Below are positions 3,815 through 20,969 of a DNA stretch of 64,000 nt, piece after piece (positions within the stretch are counted from its first letter, which is position 1; every line of letters starts with the position of its first letter). The DNA is taken from positions 1,116,001 through 1,180,000 of the forward strand of contig LSRY02000028.1 of assembly GCA_001643675.2 (NCBI GenBank). The letters run 5' to 3'. The notes beneath the pieces are model-generated. The model did no database searches and was not told where the DNA came from. It saw nothing but the letters and a program-made list of their open reading frames with translations. Source of the DNA: Monocercomonoides exilis PA203. Its lineage: Eukaryota > Protista > Preaxostyla. Both the position numbers and the translations under genes were made by a program.

Positions 3815-6158
3815 ATGTCAACGAACACGCAAACAGTAAAATTTTGCACTTTCAAGGAGGGGAACATTTCATTAAATCTGAATTATGATGATTGGATGAA
3901 GGGAGTTTTGCGAGGGCTTGCGGACAAATACGATGTTGATGCGCGAGATTTGTATTTCACTCAAAAGCAAAAGATAGTTTCTGACGATGCAAAAGTGCTA
4001 GATGTTCTTAGAGTATGGCTCACTTCTTTTGTTTACAACTTCTCTTTCTTGTCGTTCTTTTCCTTATTAACAGAATACTGGAGAAACAATTTATTTAGTG
4101 AAGCGAAAACCTTCAGCTGGAGCAGAGGGCACAGCCACTGAAAATGAAAAACTCTTGCCAAGAGTTGAAGAAAATCTTTCTCCAGAGCTGCGCAGCTCAA
4201 AGCCGTTTACTGTTAGCGTGACTGTTTGCAACAACGAAATGAAAGGGAAAGCGGTTGCTGTGGAAAATGTGAAGCCAGATACAGAGATTAACGAGTTCGT
4301 TGCGATGGTGTTTGGGAACTTACATATGCTTGCAGGATATATTTCGATTGTGTCAGAGATGGGTGCAAAGTGTTCAGGAATATGGAGAAGAGGGCGTTTT
4401 GAACATCTTGAAAATTCAGAAGAAAAATATGTATCTAAGCTGACGTACTGTGGACAAAGTGGGCTGTCCTGCTGCATTTATCAGTTGATTATAGCGAATT
4501 GTTTGCAAGAGCAGGCTTCTTCATCGACGCCTTCCTCAGCCACGCCATCCTCCAGCTCAAACCCATCAAATGTTGGAACAGAGGCTGCTGAGCAAAATGG
4601 ATCTCAAACGCTTACGCTGCAGATCGATTATGGTCAAGGAAATAAAATGTTCATTGAAGCAGAAAAGGAGATGCTTGTGGAAGAGCTGAAGAAGGTATTG
4701 GAACCAGCAGTGGGAATAACCTCAAATAAGATGACGCTCGTTGGGGGAGGAACGATAATGGATAATGACAGGAAGATTTCTTCATTCTGCTTTAAAGATA
4801 AAGATAGGCTTTATGCATATGAAAAAAACGAAGGAATGTTTGAAATTTGCATCAGAAAGCTTTCAGGAAAAACACTTAAAATCGATGTTAATTCGGAGAT
4901 GACCGTTAAAGATTTAAAAGAAAGGATATACGAATATGATAACACGCCTCCATATGAGCAGAAGCTGACGTTTAATGGCAAGAATTTGGAGGATGACCGT
5001 ACTCTATCGTCCTATAATATTCAAGAGGATGCAATCATCCCTCTTGTTTTGAGACTGCCTGGAGGGAAGAGCAATGACCTGTTTGTGAAATCGCTCGGTG
5101 GGCAAACATTGAGATTTGGGATGGACACAGCAGTGACAAGAGTGAGAGATGTGAAGCAGATGGTGGCAGAAAGAGAAGGGATTCCGGTAGAGCAGCAGAG
5201 ACTGGTGTGGGGGTTGAAAGAGCTGAGAGACGAGATGGAGCTTAGTGAGTATGGGATCGGGGACAAATGCACAATGCATCTGGTGTTGAAGCTGAGGGGC
5301 GGGTTCAATCTGCGAGTGATGCATTTGGACGGGCAGGCAGTGGATGTGGAGGTGGACGGTGCAGAGTCAGTGGAGGATGTGAAGCGGAAGGTGACGGCAG
5401 TTGAAAGAATGGATGTGAGCAAGATGCGGCTGGTATCTGGAGGAAGGTGGCTGAAAGACTGTCATGTGCTGGAAGATTTTGGGATTGGACCTGAATCAAC
5501 GGTGCATCTGCTTCCAACAAGCAGAGGCGGAATGAGCGGGCCAGGGCTTGCATTTGTGGATGTGACGAAGACTGATGCGTTGGTGGAGATATCGTTCAGC
5601 AACACAGCCCCACCATGGCGTGTTGTGGGAAGTGGTATCAGCGTAGAAGGAATATGCGAGAATGAGGGATGTCCTGCATTCAAGAAACAGGTAATTTGCC
5701 GATGGGGAATGAAGAAATTTGATTTGCATGGGAGCAAGCCTTTCTGCCCGTGCTGTCTGGAACAGATTGTGCCTCTGAAGCCGGGATTCTATGATTGCAG
5801 ATGGCGAGTCAATTGTGTGAAAGAGGATGGGACACGAATGCAAATGCCATGGAAGGAAGCGGGGGATGAAAAATATACGACATACGATGAGAAGGAAGCC
5901 GGAACAGCAAAGTTTCTTTTGCTACAGATTGAGGCATTGCCCAGTGGGAGAGTTGTGAAGCATCCAACACTGCCATATGATGTGGCTGTGCCGGAGGTGT
6001 GTGGAATTTGCCACAAAGGACAGGACAAAAACTCAGTACAAATATACAAATGTGGACACTCGTTCCATCGTAATTGCGGGAGTGACTGGGAAGAGACTGT
6101 TGGAGAGTGCCCAATTTGCCGGATGAAAATGAAGGATCAGCCAGCTCAATCTGCCTGA
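3815..6158 (+). CDS. Multi-ubiquitin-like-domain protein with Cys-rich domain and C-terminal RING-H2 (exons 3815-4012, 4074-6158)
   Basis: A GT..AG intron at 4013-4073 joins ORF 3815 in frame to ORF 4098. Four clear Ubl domains follow, three ending LRLPGG, LKLRGG and TSRGG. Then comes a Cys-rich domain (APPWR..G..EGICxNxxC..CPCC) and a C3H2C3 RING (CGIC..CGHSFH..C..W..CPIC). Confidence 0.9.
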
Positions 6159-10387: not shown

Positions 10388-10703
10388 TGTTATTTATTGT
10401 TTCAAAACATCCAATTTAAATTATAACATAAAAGATTTTTACCGTAATTAATTATAAATCTATAATAAATTATCAATGCCTTGTTCATTAATTCCTTCGA
10501 TAGCTTTCACTTCGAAAAATTGAAAAATGAATAGAATAGTATCGATCTATCATATTATTATAGAATTCGAATTTTTTAACACCATCTGATATTGTAAATG
10601 AATATTTTAAAAAGTGCTAATTATCAATTTTTTCTCTCAACAATGTTATGAATGTTATTATATAATTTATGATCATTCGACTTTGTTGTTGAAAGTGAGG
10701 CAA

Positions 10704-13700
10704 ATGAAACGAAAAAACTATTTTAAAAAGTGGAATGAATTTTTTCGCTTTATTTTGGTGTTGTGTTATTTGGAAAATAGTTTATTTGCGAATTCAAACA
10801 ACGAGAATTGTAATCAGCAATCTACATCTTCAGTTCGACGTGAAATCGTTCATTTCGCACATTCAAATGGTAATTCAAAATTAGATGATGTAAAGGTTCC
10901 ATGTGCAAGCACGTCTTTTGTTGATTTTTCTTCTTTATCGTCGAAATCTTTTTTACAAGATTTTTCTTTGCCTTATGAACTTCATGATGAAAATGGAGAC
11001 GATTTAGATATATTTTTTGCTGAAGAAAATCATCCTAAAGTTTTTATTACTCTTTCTTTTTTTTCAATGGAAGGAATGGATGATGACATGGTCGATAATA
11101 CAAAACTTGTTGTAAAGCGTGAATTCTTGATTGAACGAGGCGTTGGTATCTTATTTTTGCGTCACATGCGCGCTCAGTTGTGCCACTCTCCTATATTAGT
11201 TATTACAGCTTCTCTAACTTTGGATTCTCAAACATCTTCTTTACTTGGAAGTCCTTTTGTATTTCAACCAATGTTCAGTGATCCTACAAATATTATATCG
11301 TATATACAAACAAAGAAATGTTCATCCCCTCTTTTGTACACGAAAGACTCGCACATTTCTTTACCAGTTGGTGACATAATTCTTGTTCATTTTCGTGTTA
11401 CAATTTCATCTAGCGATTCATCAAATGATACGGTTATCTCAGATCTAACGGGTGTTGATTTATCGTCACTTCAAATTCACATTACTCCACCCCATAAACT
11501 TATTGATGAGCAAAAACCAAGCACAGCAAGAGAGAATGCGGAAGATGAAAACGAAGTTATATTGGATCTTCAGTCAAGAATTCATCAATCAGATGAAACG
11601 TTCGCTGCGCGCCTTGAAGTATGGAGAGCAAACGAAGACGAAAAAGAAAGAGAGGTTGGCTATCGGGCCTTTGAAAATGGAGAGTTCGCAAGAGATGGAA
11701 GCGAGCAGATGAGCACTCATAATAGACAATCCCCAAGCGCATCTGTAGCTGAAGGTTCAGCAGCAAAGGGGAGTTTCTCTCTGAGCAAACAGGAAAAGAA
11801 GGCGCCAAAAGGAGTTCTGCCTTCGAATGCTGCTGAAAGTGCTTGTGAGTTGCCGCTGCTGCGTGCGAATGGCGAGCAAGAAGACGACGAGATTGTTCTG
11901 CTGCTGAGAGTGTGGCGGAACGGAGAGTATCTCATCAAAGCGACAATGAACAGCGGAGTCTCCGACGGAGAGGCTGAGGATGAGCAGGCGAAGGAGGATG
12001 CTGCAGAAGTGAAGCAGATTGAGAGCAAAACAATCTCTCTGGTTGCTTCCACTCAGTCCATATGCCCATCGATGTCTGTTGTCACTCTTCTGCAGGTCAA
12101 TGACTTTGAGGTTACTAACACAAACACAAGTTCTTCTGATGCATCATTGAAATTGTCATCATCATCATCTTCTTCTTCTTCTTCCTCTTCTCTTTCTTCT
12201 TCTTCTTCTTCTCATTTTTCCTTCTCCTCCTCTTTCTCTCCTTCTCTCTTCGATCTTTCTCTTTCTCCTCCTCAAAGTATACTCAGCGCTCCTTCTCAAA
12301 ATTCTCATTCTTCTTCTTCTTCTTCTTCTTCTTCTTCTTCTTCTTCTTCTTCTTCTTCTTCTTCTTCTTCTTCTTCTTCTTCTTCCATTTTAACTCAAAC
12401 AATTCCCATTCATGTTTCTGCTGGTGGATCAGTCGATCTGCTTGTGGAGTTGTTCGATCCATTCTCCAATCCAGTTGCCAACACAACCAGCTCTTTTCAG
12501 AAGGAAAGTGCTTCAGGAGATGAAGCAGCAGAAGACGATGCATTCGACATAAACGATTGGATTGTGGCTCAATTTGCATGTCCGTTTGAATATGCTGAAG
12601 CGAATAATGCGCAAACATCTTCTTCTTCTTCTTCTTCTTCTTCTTCTTCTTCTTCAAATACGAACACAAACCTTCCCCTGAAGCTCCTGTCCTCCACCTT
12701 CAACAAATACACCATCCGTGTGACGCTCCCATCTGCCCGCAGCTGTCCCATCTATCTTTCCCTTCACTCGCCCCGCTGCGACCCAGCTGCCAACAACGAG
12801 GCGTTGAATGGGACGCCTCTGCCGTTTCTTGTCCATCCTGTCTCATTCGACCCCAAAAACACGAAAGTTGAGTGGCCTGGCTTGTCTGTGCTGAAGGTAC
12901 CACGAGAAACAGGCGGAGTTGGATATTTGAAAGGAGCGTCAAATGGAACATCAGAAGGAATATCAGAAGTGCCTTTAAAAGGAGCAGTGAAAGGGTCTCT
13001 TGTGCCAGATGACTCGAAAGGTGTGTCGTTTCTGATCTCAACGAAGGACAAGGTGGGCAGCTCGTGTGTGTTGGACGATGCAGAATTGAACGAATTCACT
13101 CTGAAGGTGATGACAGGGATTGACTTGGAAGACACAGAAGACGATGAAGAAGAAAGAAAGAGACTGATAAAAGAACAGAAAGTGGTGCATATTGAGAAGC
13201 TTGTGTATGTTCCTTCACCATCTTCTTCCTCCTCCTCCTCCAACTCTTCAATAGAAAGTGACAGCACGTCCATTCTGACACGATCTGCATCTGATCCATC
13301 TCTTCTGATAGCGCACTGGATGTACTCTTCACTCTCACCTGGCAAATACTCCATCAACCTCTGCTTGAATGAGGAGAATGTTGGCGACGAGTGGAAAGTC
13401 AAAGTGCAGCCAGGGTATCCTGCTCTGAAGTACACACAACTGCAGCTGGCAACGATGGAGCATGATGTGAGCGATGAGGAAGAGATGAAAAAATTGAAGT
13501 GGGTGACTGTATTTGACGGGTGGGAGAGAGAACACAAGAAAGCATCAAATAGCAATGAAAAAGAAGAAGAAAATGTGGAAGAGCATTACATCAACAGCCA
13601 ATCCAATGGAGGCGATAATGATATGGAAGACCCGCATGACTGGTATGAGTCGTATCTGAGGCATGGCATTATTGATGCAGGGGCTTATCTGTTTGTGCGA

Positions 13701-16700
13701 GTTGTTCTGTCAGACTCAGAGCACAACATCCATTCAACAGACACACAATACATCGAAGATGTCAATGTGAAGCTGGTGGATATCCTGTCTGTCGAAGGAG
13801 AAGTCATCACGTTCAACCAGAAGGTGTTCAAAGACAAGAGCAGAGGAAAAGGAAAAAACAGCAATTTCAATGAAACAGCAACATCTTCTTCTTCTTCTTC
13901 TTCTTCTTCTTCTTCTTCTTCTTCTTCTTCTTCTTCTTCTTCTTCTTCTTCTTCTTCTTCTTCTTCTTCTTCTTCTTCATCCACATCTTCTTCTTCTTCT
14001 TCTTCTTCTTCTTCTTCTTCTTCTTCTTCTTCTTCTTCTTCTTCTTCTTCTTCTTCTTCTTCTTCTTCTTCTTCTTCTTCTTCTTCTTCTTCTTCTTCTT
14101 CTTCTTCTACAATCATTTCATCATCAACACACACACACAATCACAATAACAATGACGATGAAGACGATTCACTGAAATACACATCTGTCTTCTCAGCCAA
14201 ACTAACCAAAAGAGCTAATTATGTTTTTGTACTCACATTTCGTGATCAATACTTGGAGACCATCTCAGCTCCATCACATTCATCTTCATCTTCTTCATCT
14301 TCATTGTCCAATTCCCAATCAAACAAACTGCCTGCCAACTTCAACATCTTTGTGAAGTCTTCTTCTGTCCACACGCCTTCCTCCCTTGTCTTCCCTCTGA
14401 TCTCGCCTGTTGGAGTGAATGAGACAATGCTCATTCCAGTCGCCCTCTTCGACAGCTTCGACAATCAAGTGACACTCTTCTCTGAGCTGAAGAAGCAGAA
14501 CATCGAAGTCAGCATGCGGGTGATATCTGAGATAGAAGACGATCCAAAGACACCTGATGACTATACTGATGATAATGACGATGATGATAAAGAAGATGAA
14601 AAGAAAAAGAGCAGAAGGAATTCAGATGAGAAAGTGAATGGAACAGATGTGAAATACATCAATGGAAAGAAATATGTCCCTGTTCCTCCGCCAAAATGGC
14701 TGTTAGACTATCACAAACAGAATTTGAGACAGAACAATCAATCAACATCTGCAACAACATCTTCTTCCTCTTCTTCTTCTTCTTCTTCTCATTCCAATGA
14801 CCTTGTCCACTGGTTCAGTGTTCCTTTCACAATGCGTCCGATCTTTAAGAACGAGGTGTATCCTGCCTCGCCCCATCCAAAGTGCCACAAGCCGAGTTTT
14901 GAGCTCTCTCTCGACTCGCCCACCAACCACATCGCCCTCGTCGCCCAGTTCCGTCTGAAGATCGGCGACACTTATGTCTCCCCTGAAAGTGATGTTGTCA
15001 GATTTGAGTCTTCGCCTGTTGTAATGTTTGAGAACTCCCTCTTTTCGATGGATTCAAACTTCACCACGAGAAATGAGCCAGCTATTGGATTTCTTTCTCT
15101 CTATGACATGTACAAAAACTCCTTCGACTGCACCACTGCTGTCATGAGTGACATCTCATTCATTTTGTATCAGTTCGAATATGACGACGAAATCAACAAT
15201 TCTTCAAGAGCTGCTAATAACAGCACAGCAAATGGAAAGCCATCGCATTTGGCATCTTTTCAGAGCAAAAAACAATCAACTCGCTTTTCTCCCTCAGAAC
15301 ACACAAACAGCAGAAGCAACGATGAATTTGAGAGAATATGCGACGAGAGCATTCTGATTGACTCGTCTGGAAGGAGAAGACAGCCAGTTGCTGTTCTGAA
15401 GAAGAAATGCCGCGATCCGTTTGATTTGCCATCTCATTCACCAAATCCATTTCCATCTTATTCCTCTTCTTCTTCTTCTTCTTCAAACACATTATTCACC
15501 TATTTCTCTTCTCCATCAACTATAACCTCTCAAGTGGAGTTCAACATGGACATAGCAGAACATGGGTATTATTGCCTTGTGGCCACTCACTCACTCGATA
15601 GAAACGTCAAAATCTTCCAGTCGATCAACGTCTTCCCAACTGAAATAAGCAAAAGATACACTTCTTATTGCTTTTCATCTTCGCCTATCTTTTCTTCTTC
15701 TTCGTCTACTGCCAATTCTCAATCGAATTCTCTTTCGTCATCTTCTTCTACTTTCCATTCTCTCATCCCATCAACATCAACATCAACAGCATCATCATCT
15801 TCCTCTTCCTCTTCAATTCCGAGTGAAGAAGTGTTCACTGCAGGGCAGACGATCTACCTCACTCTGCGTGTGAAGGGAGTGAATGGCGATCCCATCGCAT
15901 GTCATTCGCAGAGACCAGATGAGACCTATTCGCGTGTGCTGGTGTCGATTCCTGCGAGTTGGATGCCCAATTTGAGTGAGATGGAGAGAGAGAAGGAGAA
16001 AGTGAAGGAAAAGATGGAGAAAGAGAGGGAAAGGGAGAAGGAGCACAAGAGGAAAAAGGAGAGAGATTTTGGCTTGTTTGGCTTGGGAGGGCATTTGAAG
16101 AGCAGAAAAGAGGAGGAAGGGATGCTGTTGTGGAGTGGAGGAAATATCAGCTGGATGAGTGCAGCCAGCAACACTACAAAAGAACTGAGGCTGCGCAACT
16201 TCACAAAATCTACTATGAAATGGCAGCTTCCGAAATCATCTTCATCTCATTCATTGTATGTGTGTATGTCCACTTGTGGAAGAGCAGAAGGTGAATTTAT
16301 TGTTCCTCTCCGCTTGACACGTGCTGGAAGAGTGCCATTGACTGTTGATCTTTCTCGTGGCATCATCAAAGACGAGGTGCTTGATCCAGTTGATGATGAT
16401 GATAATGGCAGAAGAGTGAATGAGGAGGTGAGAAAGACAAGAAAGATGGCAAATAGGAATGGAATGGGTGGAAGAGCACTTAAGGCAGAGGAGGCAGAAG
16501 AAGAAGAGATCATCACAAGATATTCTGAGTATCTGCGCAGAAAAGCAGATGCCTCTTCCTCTTCTACTGCTTCTTCTTTTTCAAATTCATCGAACTTCCC
16601 TGATGCATCGATGACACGTGTGGTGTTTGACCCGCTGTGGAATGGAACAGTCTTGATTGTTGCTGGTGAGGTTGATGTTAGCAAGACAGAAGTGCTCTCT

Positions 16701-19700
16701 TCGCTCACAAAAGTGAAGGAGAAAGCGAAGATCTTCCGAAAAATGCCAAAAGTGCTGAAGGAGAAGGATATCAGGAGTGTCTTAGCTGACTCGCCAGATG
16801 TGCAGATGAGCGATATTTTGGATATCCCAACTATTTCTGTGTCGTCGCACATTCAGTTCAACGACAAGTATCTGAATCCAGTGACTTGTTCTGAGCGGCT
16901 GGTAGACAGACTGAAGGTGGAGTTGGTCTTCCAACACACAAACGAGAGTGAAAAATCGAATGAGAAAGACAGAAAGTCAGAAAGTACAACTTCTTTTGCC
17001 ACATCCACAGAAGATTCCCTCATTCAGACTGAGTTGACGTGCAGTGCAGATCCAGCGACTGATCCGTCAGTCCATTTGACACTGAAGAATGTGCCTGAAA
17101 GTGCTCGCTTCCACGCTGTCATCCATTTAGACGATGCTCTCATTCCACTCCACCTCACTTTTGAGCCATCTGCACCGAGCGTGGCATCTTCCTTCATGAA
17201 AGAGCACACACCGGCTGTGCTTTCAATCATCTTCTTCACTTTCTCCTCGTTTCTGCTGTTACTTATCTTCGTCTTCCGCAACAAGCTATCTATTTCTAAG
17301 CGGGAGAGGAGGAAGAAGGAGATGGCAGCCAACGACAAGGCACTTGAAGCATCTCTTCTCGAAGACAAGGAAAGCTCGTGGGACATCGCTGGCTCAAAAG
17401 TGAAGTTTCTGAAGCAAGTTTCGAGAGGCACGACAGGAGAGGTGTTTTTGGCAGACTGGGATGGGCTGATGGTCGCAGTGAAGTGCATCTACAGAAGTGA
17501 TGTGGTGTCTGTCTCGATGACTGCCACTGCCTCTTCTTCATCTGCTTCCTCTGCGCCATCATCATCATCATCCTCTTCTTCTTCTTCTTCTTCTGATTGT
17601 CCTTCTGTTCTGAATGCTGCCAGTCAGAGTGCAAAAGCACAAAGGAAAGGAAATGAAGAGAATGGAGACATTAGCAAAGCTGCGAATGACTCAAAGAAAA
17701 ACCAGATGAATCAATCGATAGTGAAAGCCCACCCATCAAATGAGGCTTCTGCTTCACTAATTTCATTCATCAACCAATTGGAGAATGCTAACAACATTTC
17801 AGCTGGAAATGGGAATGCTTCAAATAATCCTTCACTTTCAAGCACAAATGTCATTCTGAATGGAAAAGCTGTCTCAGAACAAGAGCAATCAAATGGGATG
17901 CAATTGGCAGAAGGAGGGAATGCTCAATGCGAACGACCGAAAACAGTGGAAGAGCTGTTGGAATTGGCAAAGGCTGTTCCTGTGTGGCGAGGGAATGAGA
18001 AGCTAAAGAGCTCTGCCTCATTCAGCATCCCTTCGTTTTCAATTGTGAGGAAGTCGACATCAACCAGCCAAATTCAGACAGAAAAAGATGCTCAAACAAA
18101 GAAAGCTCAATCACAACAAACAGAAGACAGCCAAATTGAAGCTGTTTCTGACACAACTCCGCTGCTTGCAAAGAGCAGCAATCGTTCTTATTCCACTTCA
18201 TCTTCAACACATTCACATTCACATTCACAATCATCTTCCTCCTCTTCCTCATCCACTACAATTTACAGATTGCCCGACAACCTTCTTCGCAAAGCAACAC
18301 TTGTACCTCTTCCAATCACTCCTCTCCCATCCACTTCTTTCTCTCCTTCCATCTTTTCTCCCTCTTGTCTGCTCAACCCATCTCTTCAGATGCCAATGCC
18401 CAGCCCTCCTTCTGCTGCCTTCCCGAATGCCAACTCTTTCACTCAAAATGCATCTGCAAAAGGAAACAATAACGACAGAAACAATTCGATGAATACAAAC
18501 ATTGGATATGGCAGCAGGGCAGATATGAACTCATCATCATCATCCCCGTCTGCTTCTTCTTCTTCTTATCAATCAGCTCAAAGTCTGATGCACTCACAAA
18601 ACAGCACTCGTTCGCATCCACTTTCTTCTTCTTCGACAACTTTGCTCAGCAACAAATCTTCTTCTCATTCGTCTTCTCTCATCTTATCTCCCAACTCCAC
18701 ACTCACACCACCACTCACACCAACACCTTCAACACCCACTACACCATCACATTCTTCTTCTCTTTCTTCTTCTCCTTCTTCCTCTCCATTCTCCTCTCCT
18801 TCCACTTCTTCTCTTGCTCCTCCTTCTCCCTCAGTGACTGCCCTGTATGCTTTGCACATTGCCACTGGTGAGCACATTTATGACTCTGAGCCAGAAATTC
18901 TGAAATGTCTGTCGCATCCCAACATCGTCCCTCTCTTTGGCACCATCACCGATGCCTCGCGGGTGATGATGGTGATGGAGTACATCCCCACCACGCTCCA
19001 CGACATCGTCTATGCAGACCTCTCCAGACAGCGCAAGACTCTCAACGACGGCAACAAAACAGGACGTTCCTTTGGATTATCTTCGTCTGGTGCTTCTGCT
19101 ATGGACTCTGCTGCCAGCAAGATGATTGTTCCTTCTCCACTCCACTCGCTCCTCAATCCGAAGCGGATGTTTTCAGACAGTTTGTCTTCTGCTTCATCAG
19201 CAGACCGAATGCCGTTGCATCCACGTATTGCACTCACCCTCTCTCTGGGCGTGGCGCGTGGGCTGTGCTATCTGCACGACCTGTCTCCGAAGATTGTGCA
19301 TGGCGATCTTTCACTGCGGAATGTGCTGGTTGATTATGAGCTGCGGGTGAAGCTGTGCGACTTTGGGTGTGCGAGGAAGTTGGAGTGGATGGCAGACGGG
19401 GCAACAGCCTATGCGATCAGAAAGAAGATGTATTTGAGAAGAAGAAGAGAGTTGTTGATGAAGAGGAGGCTGATGGGATGGATGGGGAAGGCAAGAACTG
19501 AGTCAAGGAAAGCAGCGCTTGTGTTGGATAGCGATGCATTTGAGATGACGTTGGAGGAAGAGAAGGAAGAAGAAGAAATGTTCCGCAAAGAGATGGAGAG
19601 TAGAGAGATGGGAAGTGAGAGGAATGGGAATGGAAGGATGTTGGAGGAAGAGAAAAGAGAAGCTGACTTGGCTATTAATTCAGGGAAAGAACATGACATT

Positions 19701-20969
19701 TACTGCATTCGCGATGACCTGAATCTGACAATGAATGAAAAAGAGCAGATGCAAATGAATGGAATGGGCAGTGAGCAAAAGAAAGAGAGAAATGAAGATG
19801 GAAGCAGAAAATCAACAGAAGCTTGTTTGACAGCATCTCAGCTTAGTAACTACGAAGAGTGTGAAGAGGATTATTCAATAACATTCCTTCCACCAGCAGA
19901 TGAAGTGAAAGCATGCTCACTTTCAAATTCGTCTTCTTCTTCTTCATCTCCTTCCTCATTGCCATCTGCATCTTCTTCTTCTTCTTCTTCATTCATGCAA
20001 CCTTCTTCTGCTCCTTCGGTGAATGTTACTTCATCCACTTCAGAAAGTCTTCTGCCAAGCAGCTTGTATCCCTCAAATGACATGTTCCTGAAGCAAAATC
20101 CAGACAATTCGCAAATCAGAGACAAAACACGCAAAGATGCATCGCCATTGACAATTCAGCCATCTTCTTTTGCTCGCAAACGGAGTTATGCTCGTCCACA
20201 CCTTCAAACATCTTCCTCATCATCAAACATGTCTTCATCTTCGCTGACTTCATTATCATTGGCCACTTCCACATCGCCTTCCTCTTCTTCTTCATTATCA
20301 TCTGCTTCATCGTCTTCATCGTCTCCCTCGTATGAATTGGAGTGTGGATGTGCCTTCTGCACAGCACTCACCGATCCTCAGCGCCACTCCACTTATTCCC
20401 TCTTTCCTCTGCTGTCGTTCTCTCAGTCTCTTTATGATGCACCTGAAGTTGTGGCTGGCTGCAAGCTGATTGATGAGAAGGCAGATGTCTACTCATTTGG
20501 CATCATCCTCCACGAGACATTCACTGGACACAAGCCATTCCAGGTGGATGAGCTGAATGCACTGAAGCACCCTTCAATGAACATGTGCTCACCTTACTCT
20601 GTCTCTGACTCCCGCATCGAGATGAGCAAGCAGAGGCAGTTTGGCAGTGATGTGATGAGAGAAGGCAGAGGAGGAGAGTGGCAAAGCGAATACAAGAGTG
20701 ATGTGACTGGAAGGATGGGTGGAAATATGAATGTGTTGAATGGCAGCAGCATCAGTAGCAATGGCTCATCTCGCTCGCCTTCTTCTTTTGCTGATGCCTC
20801 TTCTGCAGACTCCGCCCTGAACAGCCGTCTGCTCATTCCTCGCCCTGATTCGGGTGTCCCTCATTTCCTGTCTCAGCTGATGTGTGCATGTTGGCGCCCC
20901 ATTCCGCATCAGCGCCCGACAATGAATGAAATTGTAGATGTGCTGTCAAGTCTGACACAGATGCTTTGA
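10704..20969 (+). CDS. Giant single-pass receptor kinase (TKL/TK-like) with filamin/Ig-like ectodomain repeats
   Basis: One open frame, with a signal-peptide-like segment after ATG 10704. Repeated motifs of the type AG...L.V...D.F.N. TM helix AVLSIIFFTFSSFLLLLIFVF (~17214-17276) followed by basic residues. Kinase motifs in order: SRGTTGEV, VAVK, HPNIV, VMEY, HGDLSLRN, DFG, APE, DVYSFG, CW..RP. Confidence 0.9.
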   Translation: MKRKNYFKKWNEFFRFILVLCYLENSLFANSNNENCNQQSTSSVRREIVHFAHSNGNSKLDDVKVPCASTSFVDFSSLSSKSFLQDFSLPYELHDENGDDLDIFFAEENHPKVFITLSFFSMEGMDDDMVDNTKLVVKREFLIERGVGILFLRHMRAQLCHSPILVITASLTLDSQTSSLLGSPFVFQPMFSDPTNIISYIQTKKCSSPLLYTKDSHISLPVGDIILVHFRVTISSSDSSNDTVISDLTGVDLSSLQIHITPPHKLIDEQKPSTARENAEDENEVILDLQSRIHQSDETFAARLEVWRANEDEKEREVGYRAFENGEFARDGSEQMSTHNRQSPSASVAEGSAAKGSFSLSKQEKKAPKGVLPSNAAESACELPLLRANGEQEDDEIVLLLRVWRNGEYLIKATMNSGVSDGEAEDEQAKEDAAEVKQIESKTISLVASTQSICPSMSVVTLLQVNDFEVTNTNTSSSDASLKLSSSSSSSSSSSSLSSSSSSHFSFSSSFSPSLFDLSLSPPQSILSAPSQNSHSSSSSSSSSSSSSSSSSSSSSSSSSSILTQTIPIHVSAGGSVDLLVELFDPFSNPVANTTSSFQKESASGDEAAEDDAFDINDWIVAQFACPFEYAEANNAQTSSSSSSSSSSSSSNTNTNLPLKLLSSTFNKYTIRVTLPSARSCPIYLSLHSPRCDPAANNEALNGTPLPFLVHPVSFDPKNTKVEWPGLSVLKVPRETGGVGYLKGASNGTSEGISEVPLKGAVKGSLVPDDSKGVSFLISTKDKVGSSCVLDDAELNEFTLKVMTGIDLEDTEDDEEERKRLIKEQKVVHIEKLVYVPSPSSSSSSSNSSIESDSTSILTRSASDPSLLIAHWMYSSLSPGKYSINLCLNEENVGDEWKVKVQPGYPALKYTQLQLATMEHDVSDEEEMKKLKWVTVFDGWEREHKKASNSNEKEEENVEEHYINSQSNGGDNDMEDPHDWYESYLRHGIIDAGAYLFVRVVLSDSEHNIHSTDTQYIEDVNVKLVDILSVEGEVITFNQKVFKDKSRGKGKNSNFNETATSSSSSSSSSSSSSSSSSSSSSSSSSSSSSSSSSTSSSSSSSSSSSSSSSSSSSSSSSSSSSSSSSSSSSSSSSSSTIISSSTHTHNHNNNDDEDDSLKYTSVFSAKLTKRANYVFVLTFRDQYLETISAPSHSSSSSSSSLSNSQSNKLPANFNIFVKSSSVHTPSSLVFPLISPVGVNETMLIPVALFDSFDNQVTLFSELKKQNIEVSMRVISEIEDDPKTPDDYTDDNDDDDKEDEKKKSRRNSDEKVNGTDVKYINGKKYVPVPPPKWLLDYHKQNLRQNNQSTSATTSSSSSSSSSSHSNDLVHWFSVPFTMRPIFKNEVYPASPHPKCHKPSFELSLDSPTNHIALVAQFRLKIGDTYVSPESDVVRFESSPVVMFENSLFSMDSNFTTRNEPAIGFLSLYDMYKNSFDCTTAVMSDISFILYQFEYDDEINNSSRAANNSTANGKPSHLASFQSKKQSTRFSPSEHTNSRSNDEFERICDESILIDSSGRRRQPVAVLKKKCRDPFDLPSHSPNPFPSYSSSSSSSSNTLFTYFSSPSTITSQVEFNMDIAEHGYYCLVATHSLDRNVKIFQSINVFPTEISKRYTSYCFSSSPIFSSSSSTANSQSNSLSSSSSTFHSLIPSTSTSTASSSSSSSSIPSEEVFTAGQTIYLTLRVKGVNGDPIACHSQRPDETYSRVLVSIPASWMPNLSEMEREKEKVKEKMEKEREREKEHKRKKERDFGLFGLGGHLKSRKEEEGMLLWSGGNISWMSAASNTTKELRLRNFTKSTMKWQLPKSSSSHSLYVCMSTCGRAEGEFIVPLRLTRAGRVPLTVDLSRGIIKDEVLDPVDDDDNGRRVNEEVRKTRKMANRNGMGGRALKAEEAEEEEIITRYSEYLRRKADASSSSTASSFSNSSNFPDASMTRVVFDPLWNGTVLIVAGEVDVSKTEVLSSLTKVKEKAKIFRKMPKVLKEKDIRSVLADSPDVQMSDILDIPTISVSSHIQFNDKYLNPVTCSERLVDRLKVELVFQHTNESEKSNEKDRKSESTTSFATSTEDSLIQTELTCSADPATDPSVHLTLKNVPESARFHAVIHLDDALIPLHLTFEPSAPSVASSFMKEHTPAVLSIIFFTFSSFLLLLIFVFRNKLSISKRERRKKEMAANDKALEASLLEDKESSWDIAGSKVKFLKQVSRGTTGEVFLADWDGLMVAVKCIYRSDVVSVSMTATASSSSASSAPSSSSSSSSSSSSDCPSVLNAASQSAKAQRKGNEENGDISKAANDSKKNQMNQSIVKAHPSNEASASLISFINQLENANNISAGNGNASNNPSLSSTNVILNGKAVSEQEQSNGMQLAEGGNAQCERPKTVEELLELAKAVPVWRGNEKLKSSASFSIPSFSIVRKSTSTSQIQTEKDAQTKKAQSQQTEDSQIEAVSDTTPLLAKSSNRSYSTSSSTHSHSHSQSSSSSSSSTTIYRLPDNLLRKATLVPLPITPLPSTSFSPSIFSPSCLLNPSLQMPMPSPPSAAFPNANSFTQNASAKGNNNDRNNSMNTNIGYGSRADMNSSSSSPSASSSSYQSAQSLMHSQNSTRSHPLSSSSTTLLSNKSSSHSSSLILSPNSTLTPPLTPTPSTPTTPSHSSSLSSSPSSSPFSSPSTSSLAPPSPSVTALYALHIATGEHIYDSEPEILKCLSHPNIVPLFGTITDASRVMMVMEYIPTTLHDIVYADLSRQRKTLNDGNKTGRSFGLSSSGASAMDSAASKMIVPSPLHSLLNPKRMFSDSLSSASSADRMPLHPRIALTLSLGVARGLCYLHDLSPKIVHGDLSLRNVLVDYELRVKLCDFGCARKLEWMADGATAYAIRKKMYLRRRRELLMKRRLMGWMGKARTESRKAALVLDSDAFEMTLEEEKEEEEMFRKEMESREMGSERNGNGRMLEEEKREADLAINSGKEHDIYCIRDDLNLTMNEKEQMQMNGMGSEQKKERNEDGSRKSTEACLTASQLSNYEECEEDYSITFLPPADEVKACSLSNSSSSSSSPSSLPSASSSSSSSFMQPSSAPSVNVTSSTSESLLPSSLYPSNDMFLKQNPDNSQIRDKTRKDASPLTIQPSSFARKRSYARPHLQTSSSSSNMSSSSLTSLSLATSTSPSSSSSLSSASSSSSSPSYELECGCAFCTALTDPQRHSTYSLFPLLSFSQSLYDAPEVVAGCKLIDEKADVYSFGIILHETFTGHKPFQVDELNALKHPSMNMCSPYSVSDSRIEMSKQRQFGSDVMREGRGGEWQSEYKSDVTGRMGGNMNVLNGSSISSNGSSRSPSSFADASSADSALNSRLLIPRPDSGVPHFLSQLMCACWRPIPHQRPTMNEIVDVLSSLTQML
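12308..12386 (+). repeat. (TCT)n microsatellite encoding poly-Ser
   Basis: Directly visible, in frame within the kinase ORF. Confidence 0.9.
13884..14108 (+). repeat. (TCT)n microsatellite, ~225 bp, encoding ~75 residues of almost pure Ser
   Basis: Directly visible, with one interruption (tcatccaca) near 13977-13985. Confidence 0.95.

Follow-up and report, generated by a model that had tools for sequence, protein, structure and literature searches.

Here we describe a gene at positions 3815-6158 of a 64,000-nt stretch of the Monocercomonoides exilis PA203 genome (contig LSRY02000028.1, positions 1,116,001 to 1,180,000 of the forward strand; the whole stretch is called the window below). Its product joins an array of ubiquitin-like (Ubl) units to a Cys-rich domain and a RING-H2 finger. 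The protein belongs to a widespread and undescribed family which, to judge from sequence, consists of RING-H2 ubiquitin ligases (E3) made as fusions to ubiquitin or Ubl units, and the Gly-Gly (GG) pair in front of the Cys-rich domain is kept in the alignments of this family far more often than chance would explain. We regard it as an even call that a ubiquitin-type hydrolase cuts the M. exilis protein after this pair, at SRGG/M, which would free a 208-aa E3 made of the Cys-rich domain and the RING and, from the N-terminal side, a multi-Ubl fragment whose GG end is free. Natural ubiquitin fusions are usually seen as two ribosomal proteins and scattered curiosities, and Ubl-bearing E3s as uncleaved proteins. 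The novelty lies in the partner of this natural ubiquitin fusion, a predicted ligase that contains an undescribed domain, and not in the kind of mechanism, which is familiar.

A family of ubiquitin-RING fusions in eukaryotes and giant viruses

From nine paralogous copies in M. exilis, including that of the window, we derived a profile of the Cys-rich domain, for which we coin the name FVDV domain. In a search of 1.84 billion representative proteins the profile matched 1450 representatives at an expectation value (E) <= 1e-3 and 538 at E <= 1e-10, and in all ten matches that were scanned ubiquitin lay upstream and a RING downstream of the domain. Among the members are proteins of other oxymonads, with a 'ring and ubiquitin domain containing protein' and a nine-Ubl 'polyubiquitin' from Streblomastix strix, a protein of the diatom Fragilaria crotonensis and a complete MMETSP transcript, and the family is present in Atlas clusters of Rotifera, Mucoromycota and Euglenozoa. 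It extends to giant viruses: a fold search of BFVD returned the FVDV+RING fold in Barrevirus A0A3G4ZQ93 (Foldseek E 1.9e-19, template modelling (TM) score by query 0.78) and in Pandoravirus salinus S4W648 (E 1.7e-18, TM by query 0.67), with 30-32% identity in both. A pattern scan of viral contigs gave no confirmed relative. The word-based homolog search with the family profile yielded 10 hits with uninformative names, and cluster look-ups returned mostly unnamed metagenome proteins. The architecture, which the original prediction (a first reading of the window from its letters alone) had taken to be lineage-specific, is thus found in 1450 representative proteins and in giant viruses. That it might already be a characterised family was not borne out, a literature search having found no study of ubiquitin/Ubl-FVDV-RING proteins. 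A 2007 survey of beta-grasp domains observed in a general way that combinations of Ubls with RING ligases occur and that further cleaved Ubls may await discovery (PMC1949818).

For closer comparison, 127 representatives were used in which the start of the domain was fully matched and pairwise identity was at most 50%; mean column identity of the domain alignment was 34%. The RING was recognized by a strict pattern in 85 of them, the rest having mostly variant RINGs. Some family members begin straight at the FVDV domain without ubiquitin, and the domain therefore works without ubiquitin.

Three metagenome proteins (P0096, P0128 and P0144) have ubiquitin and the FVDV domain, but the place of the RING is taken by a tail with a CaaX-like lipidation box (CCCLL or CILL) at its end. 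These proteins suggest that the FVDV domain can act at membranes without the ligase. A rotifer Atlas cluster of NAD(P)+-arginine ADP-ribosyltransferases (ARTs) aligns to residues 16-133 of the FVDV model with a TM score of 0.48, and the domain may be fused to an ART enzyme too. Two M. exilis proteins of 1285-1291 aa named 'putative scavenger receptor class B member 1' (P0024 and P0172) end in four Ubls, FVDV domain and RING; each is probably a merged gene model of a neighbor and a paralog.

Conservation of the GG junction

A GG lies at most 16 residues upstream of the FVDV domain in 112 of the 127 highly diverged representatives. The commonest tail before the domain is LRLRGG (43 representatives), and in most family members the adjoining unit is a near-canonical ubiquitin with this tail. 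The residue after the GG is Gly in 79 representatives and Pro in one, and the spacer between the GG and the Phe of FVDV has a median length of five residues, compared with seven in the window protein. In M. exilis itself, R550-G551-G552 before the domain is invariant in 10/10 paralog database proteins. The putative cutting site is the family's best-kept feature outside the fold itself.

Two controls bear on this result. Among family members with several Ubls, 14 of 16 last junctions carry a GG but only 2 of 26 internal ones do. Elsewhere in the M. exilis genome, two further genes (L019, G000:C1:1992400-1995400, 678 aa; L020, G000:C10:1705000-1708300, 942 aa) consist of 9-10 diverged Ubl units each; GG was absent from every unit boundary read in them, and their units score in Pfam as high as or above those of the window protein. 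The internal junctions and these GG-less arrays show that a Ubl does not bring a GG with it as a matter of course. Conservation of the GG motifs, which the original prediction had named as a check on its proposal, holds in the wider family for the last junction but not for the internal ones, and the M. exilis paralog L011 has lost all three GGs.

Cellular deubiquitinases cleave fusions of ubiquitin to a residue X behind Gly76, except where X is Pro. Taken with the GG conservation and both controls, this rule makes cleavage at the last junction the most parsimonious interpretation for the family.

The FVDV domain and the RING-H2 finger

The original prediction of a Cys-rich domain of ~135 aa followed by a C3H2C3 RING proved correct, the domain being ~140 aa long and the RING scoring above its Pfam cut-off with all eight zinc ligands in place (Table 1). 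Conserved columns of the FVDV domain, counted from the Phe of FVDV, are the starting F-x-D, the nearly invariant A-P-x-W-R (A19, P20, W22, R23), C35, C40, C65 and C68, which form a Cys4 site, C82 and an E-G. The A-P-x-W-R residues and the Cys4 are conserved in alignments of 75 and of 101 sequences that include the window protein. Modeled by AlphaFold2 with 75 diverse homologs, FVDV domain and RING reached a predicted local distance difference test (pLDDT) score of 95.5 and a predicted TM score of 0.86, with a well-ordered connection between the two domains. The fold of the Cys-rich domain from the nine paralog sequences alone (pLDDT 45) was unusable.

The family thus includes a confidently modeled, unnamed zinc/beta domain for which no solved relative was found. 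Pfam has no family on the FVDV domain of the window protein or of the ten scanned homologs, a profile search of solved structures returned no relative, and Foldseek against the PDB with the FVDV+RING model gave RING matches only. The best non-RING row in Foldseek/VIA-align was the Umb1 toxin particle, at a root-mean-square deviation (rmsd) of 8.9, and was not counted as a match. As the domain was searched jointly with the RING, whose matches filled the lists, we make no claim of a novel fold. ZnF-UBP and IBR had been candidate identities of the Cys-rich domain and were rejected, Pfam giving no hit. An autoproteolytic domain was likewise rejected: the conserved Cys residues have no conserved His partner and form the Cys4 site instead.

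The RING follows the pattern C-x2-C-x14-C-x-H-x2-H-x2-C-x10-C-x2-C at 6000-6119. Residues that contact the ubiquitin-conjugating enzyme (E2) in solved RING-H2 ligases are in place: Ile follows the first Cys, Trp the sixth ligand and Pro the seventh. The last Cys is followed by Arg. The predicted RING fold matches the solved RING-H2 domains of RNF165, RNF38, HRD1 and gp78 (Foldseek, VIA-align; rmsd 1.7-2.6 A). Because all zinc ligands and the usual E2-contact residues are present, the RING most likely recruits E2~ubiquitin, as known RING-E2 contacts would lead one to expect. The Pfam scan showed no IBR/RBR or SRA family, and with its single RING the protein is not of the RBR/Parkin type.

Gene structure and the Ubl array

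The window derives from the Oxford Nanopore Technologies (ONT) assembly of the amitochondriate oxymonad M. exilis, a gut protist (82.3 Mb, 101 contigs; PMC8767320). The gene has two exons (Table 1), and its spliced product of 66 + 694 = 760 aa has the same length as a database protein (P0001) that NCBI names 'putative polyubiquitin [Monocercomonoides exilis]' and that matches exon 2 with 100% identity and coverage. The exons were searched separately, and P0001 was used for whole-protein numbering.

Table 1. Parts of the gene and of its predicted product, with positions in the window
Feature	Position	Strand	Remarks
Exon 1	3815-4012	+	ATG at 3815; open reading frame reads into GT donor at 4013; 66 codons
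Intron	4013-4073	+	61 nt; GT at 4013, AG at 4072-4073; +1 frame shift, frame restored by splicing
Exon 2	4074-6158	+	694 codons plus TGA
N-terminal unit 1, possible degenerate beta-grasp	mostly within exon 1, 3815-4012	+	N-terminus agrees with NCBI paralog models
X module	4191-4499	+	Protein residues 106-208; ends G-x-SGLSC; aligns with homolog N-termini
Ser/Pro/Thr-rich linker	4500-4601	+	Read in translation
Ubl1	4602-4841	+	Pfam stretch; most diverged, without GG, ends ...YEKNEG; 15/76 identical to ubiquitin
Ubl2	4842-5066	+	Best Pfam stretch; tail LRLPGG at 5049-5066, GG 5061-5066; 34/76 identical to ubiquitin
Ubl3	5067-5303	+	Lys-Ser lead-in; tail LKLRGG at 5286-5303, GG 5298-5303; 34/76 identical to ubiquitin
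Ubl4	5304-5531	+	Begins with Phe; tail PTSRGG, TSRGG 5517-5531, GG 5526-5531; 26/76 identical to ubiquitin
Linker MSGPGLA	5532-5552	+	GG to FVDV domain, 7 residues; family median 5 residues
FVDV domain	5553-5972	+	~140 aa, beta-rich, one Cys4 zinc site; profile search, AlphaFold2 model
RING-H2 (C3H2C3)	6000-6122	+	zf-RING_2 (PF13639), exon-2 residues 643-683; 35.1 bits, cut-off 27.3

The Pfam ubiquitin family (PF00240) covers four stretches with 174.5 bits against a cut-off of 25.4; Ubl1 by itself scores 22.6 bits, under the cut-off. Identities in Table 1 were counted against the 76-residue ubiquitin of M. exilis itself. The GG of Ubl2, Ubl3 and Ubl4 aligns at ubiquitin positions 75-76 and is followed directly by Lys, Phe and Met (at 5532), respectively, whereas Ubl1 has no GG at this place. 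The sequence and the Pfam scan accordingly agree with the original prediction of four mutually non-identical Ubls, three of them ending in GG at the very positions it gave, and of a Met after the last GG.

Its weakest part was the proposal of one or two degenerate Ubl-like units at the N-terminus. Against the Ubl profile, hhalign gave residues 106-208 a probability of 18.7% (E 0.0013, a weak match) and residues 1-80 one of 2.9%, and the Pfam scan assigned no family to the N-terminal region. Every language-model or Atlas-structure neighbor of residues 1-210 is a ubiquitin-family cluster, all of them sub-threshold (scores 0.86-0.90, TM 0.34-0.48). The Ubl nature of both units is therefore at most a lead. 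The second of them, termed X module here, can be aligned to the N-terminal ends of Streblomastix strix and metagenome homologs and is thus a conserved module, whatever its fold.

Paralogs in M. exilis and selection

The M. exilis genome carries at least 11 copies with FVDV domain and RING, five of the loci being on contig 17, plus the pseudogene L012; the copies L003 and L007 contain stop codons. The true polyubiquitin genes are separate loci (L013-L018). In the 605-aa paralogs, Ubl2 has a canonical LRLRGG that is joined directly to the domain (LRLRGG-GSCPSH), and the 760-aa forms add two units. The GGs are kept in 10 of 11 paralogs even though the preceding residue may be P, R, C or M: the Ubl2 tail reads LRL[P/R/C]GG, and L010 has LRLCGG and LKLMGG. 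On these counts and those from the wider family, the two internal GG sites are a peculiarity of M. exilis and not a family feature.

The ratio of nonsynonymous to synonymous substitution rates (dN/dS) was computed by the Nei-Gojobori method between the window copy and L009, L010 and L011. It is 0.1-0.5 in every region with estimable dS, and the whole chain is therefore functional. Against L009 and L010, dS is 0.33-0.50 in Ubl4 and 1.3-2.2 in the FVDV domain, a pattern which indicates gene conversion among the paralogs, confined to Ubl4.

Open reading frames (ORFs) resembling DDE-type transposases adjoin two paralogs (L009:2616-3371, minus strand; L012:368-712, plus strand).

Proposed cleavage and its alternatives

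In the reading that we favor, the upstream half of the protein is an array of beta-grasp units whose last member ends in a ubiquitin-type GG just before the FVDV domain, and the ligase half is the FVDV zinc/beta domain packed against the RING-H2 finger. A ubiquitin-type C-terminal hydrolase would cut at SRGG/M (5526-5531/5532), as in the fusions of ubiquitin to ribosomal proteins, and would leave the 208-aa FVDV-RING ligase and a multi-Ubl fragment with a free GG end, which may have a fate of its own. The internal sites LRLPGG/K and LKLRGG/F are an addition of Monocercomonoides and may or may not be cut. The original prediction had proposed several modifiers in addition to a released ligase with a zinc domain; release fits the conserved last GG, but several modifiers are weakly supported.

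A number of observations weigh against this reading. Arg72 and Leu73 of ubiquitin are used by ubiquitin hydrolases and by the ubiquitin-activating enzyme (E1), and the Ubl4 tail PTSRGG lacks equivalents of both in a unit with only 26/76 residues identical to ubiquitin. L011, the most diverged paralog, has lost all three GGs (RAQTGV, RKKGW, SRCGW) and nevertheless retains four Ubls, FVDV domain and RING in an open frame under purifying selection. Given the gene conversion described above, conservation of the Ubl3 and Ubl4 junctions among the paralogs is not independent evidence. Ten of the 127 representatives lack a GG before the domain even though their upstream sequence is longer than 20 residues, and one of our alignments (A8) was made of GG-bearing sequences, so that its invariant G76 is circular. 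Finally, the cut is one deduced from sequence.

These observations lend some weight to the view that the protein stays an uncleaved 760-aa multi-Ubl RING ligase, a serious but lesser possibility in our estimation. The array would then be a docking or regulatory module, for contacts with the proteasome, shuttle factors or ubiquitin-binding domains or for Parkin-like autoinhibition, and the GGs would be leftovers of captured ubiquitin units. Such a ligase would agree with the modest identity of the Ubls to ubiquitin (15-34/76), the non-canonical tail of Ubl4, the constrained architecture of the GG-less L011 and the nine-Ubl member of Streblomastix strix, which has no GG at 7/8 internal junctions; part of the conservation among paralogs can be explained by gene conversion. 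The N-degron rule counts Lys and Phe as destabilizing N-terminal residues, and cutting at the internal sites would leave just these on Ubl3 and Ubl4. However, leftovers of captured ubiquitin would hardly account for a GG kept at the last junction (112/127) and not at internal ones (2/26), nor for Ubl arrays of the same genome that do without it. Moreover, most family members carry a near-canonical ubiquitin with LRLRGG, which cells cut, and to our knowledge uncleaved Ubl-bearing E3s keep no di-Gly tail.

Beyond simple release of the ligase, the family might co-translate a ligase with its own conjugatable modifier, resembling ISG15 or FAT10 (accompanied by free Ubl3 and Ubl4 in M. exilis), with FVDV-RING as its dedicated E3 and with this arrangement common to diverse protists, rotifers, fungi and giant viruses. 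We consider this unlikely. The gene encodes no E1 or E2, so that the 'self-contained conjugation cassette' of the original prediction was not upheld, and conjugation of the Ubls is a conjecture.

More unlikely still is the variant in which all three GGs of the M. exilis protein are cut to yield a tandem modifier ending in LRLPGG and free Ubl3 and Ubl4, all of which are conjugated with FVDV-RING as their dedicated E3. The three GG ends are indeed kept in 10/11 paralogs, all Ubl units are under purifying selection against three diverged paralogs, and the joint loss of the three GGs in L011, a single event, is what a shared function would lead one to expect. On the other side, the internal GGs are not a family feature, Ubl3 and Ubl4 have Lys and Thr at the position of the Arg72 that the ubiquitin E1 requires, the freed units would begin with Lys and Phe, and no standalone copy of these Ubls was identified.

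That the gene is a decaying or transposon-carried repeat without cellular function is very improbable: the dispersed multicopy family, the pseudogene, the stop codons in L003 and L007 and the transposase-like ORFs beside two copies would fit such an origin, but the 760-codon frame of the window copy is intact, dN/dS is low in all regions against three diverged paralogs, and homologs occur across eukaryotes, the complete MMETSP transcript among them. Transposon cargo was rejected for the window copy in particular, as no transposase-like ORF lies near it.

Comparison with known fusions and Ubl-bearing ligases

The closest known parallel is the fusion of ubiquitin to ribosomal proteins in UBA52 (Ub-L40) and RPS27A (Ub-S27a), in which, as here, a ubiquitin-type unit ending in RGG is joined directly to a zinc-binding partner. 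The partner differs, being a predicted E3 ligase (FVDV plus RING-H2) instead of a ribosomal protein. In the window gene, moreover, the unit at the junction is a diverged one with the tail PTSRGG, and five further beta-grasp-like units precede it. A bona fide ubiquitin with LRLRGG, as in UBA52 and RPS27A, is nonetheless present in most family members and in the 605-aa M. exilis paralogs. In its mode of action the gene most likely resembles such a UBA52/RPS27A-type fusion, here with an E3 in place of the ribosomal protein.

The head-to-tail arrangement of ubiquitin-family units, three of them ending in GG, recalls the polyubiquitins UBB and UBC and is reflected in the NCBI name. Canonical polyubiquitin, however, consists of identical units, each with RGG and then Met, whereas the units of the window protein are diverged, their GGs are followed by Lys, Phe and Met, and the chain ends in a predicted ligase. 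Parkin, UHRF1 and HOIL-1L share with it the position of the Ubl domain or domains N-terminal to a RING-type E3, and a parkin-like cluster is among the Atlas structural neighbors. These proteins have no di-Gly tail, and their middle domains are of other kinds (RBR, SRA and so on), whereas here the GG is conserved. ISG15 and FAT10 are diverged tandem Ubls with a C-terminal GG, which a fragment cut at the last site alone would resemble, and the Atlas neighbors of the N-terminus include a Ubiquitin D family cluster. Those modifiers, however, come without a fused ligase and have known conjugation enzymes; for the Ubls of the window protein, conjugation is hypothetical.

Sibbald et al. (2019, PMC6332867) tabulate 'ubiquitin-zinc ring finger' fusions of Guillardia theta and Bigelowiella natans that are expressed according to RNA-seq. 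They likewise join one or two N-terminal ubiquitins to a RING finger but, compared here by table entry only, are too short (145-273 aa) for two ubiquitins, FVDV domain and RING. The Barrevirus and Pandoravirus proteins share the FVDV+RING fold, and 'RING and ubiquitin domain' names indicate a ubiquitin fusion; they differ in being viral, uncharacterized and of other lengths, and the likeness rests on fold and names.

With 1450 representative clusters in several eukaryotic supergroups and in giant viruses, this is a large family with a predicted E3 ligase as the ubiquitin-fusion partner. If the cut is real, the ligases would be made in a fixed ratio with ubiquitin or a Ubl, and the giant-virus members would suggest a part in conflicts between host and virus. 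Natural variants exist among the M. exilis paralogs in the form of 605-aa and 760-aa proteins and one GG-less copy.

Further along the window, positions 10614-20969 of the plus strand hold a single ORF of 3451 codons that is very rich in Ser runs and has a protein-kinase-like C-terminal part.

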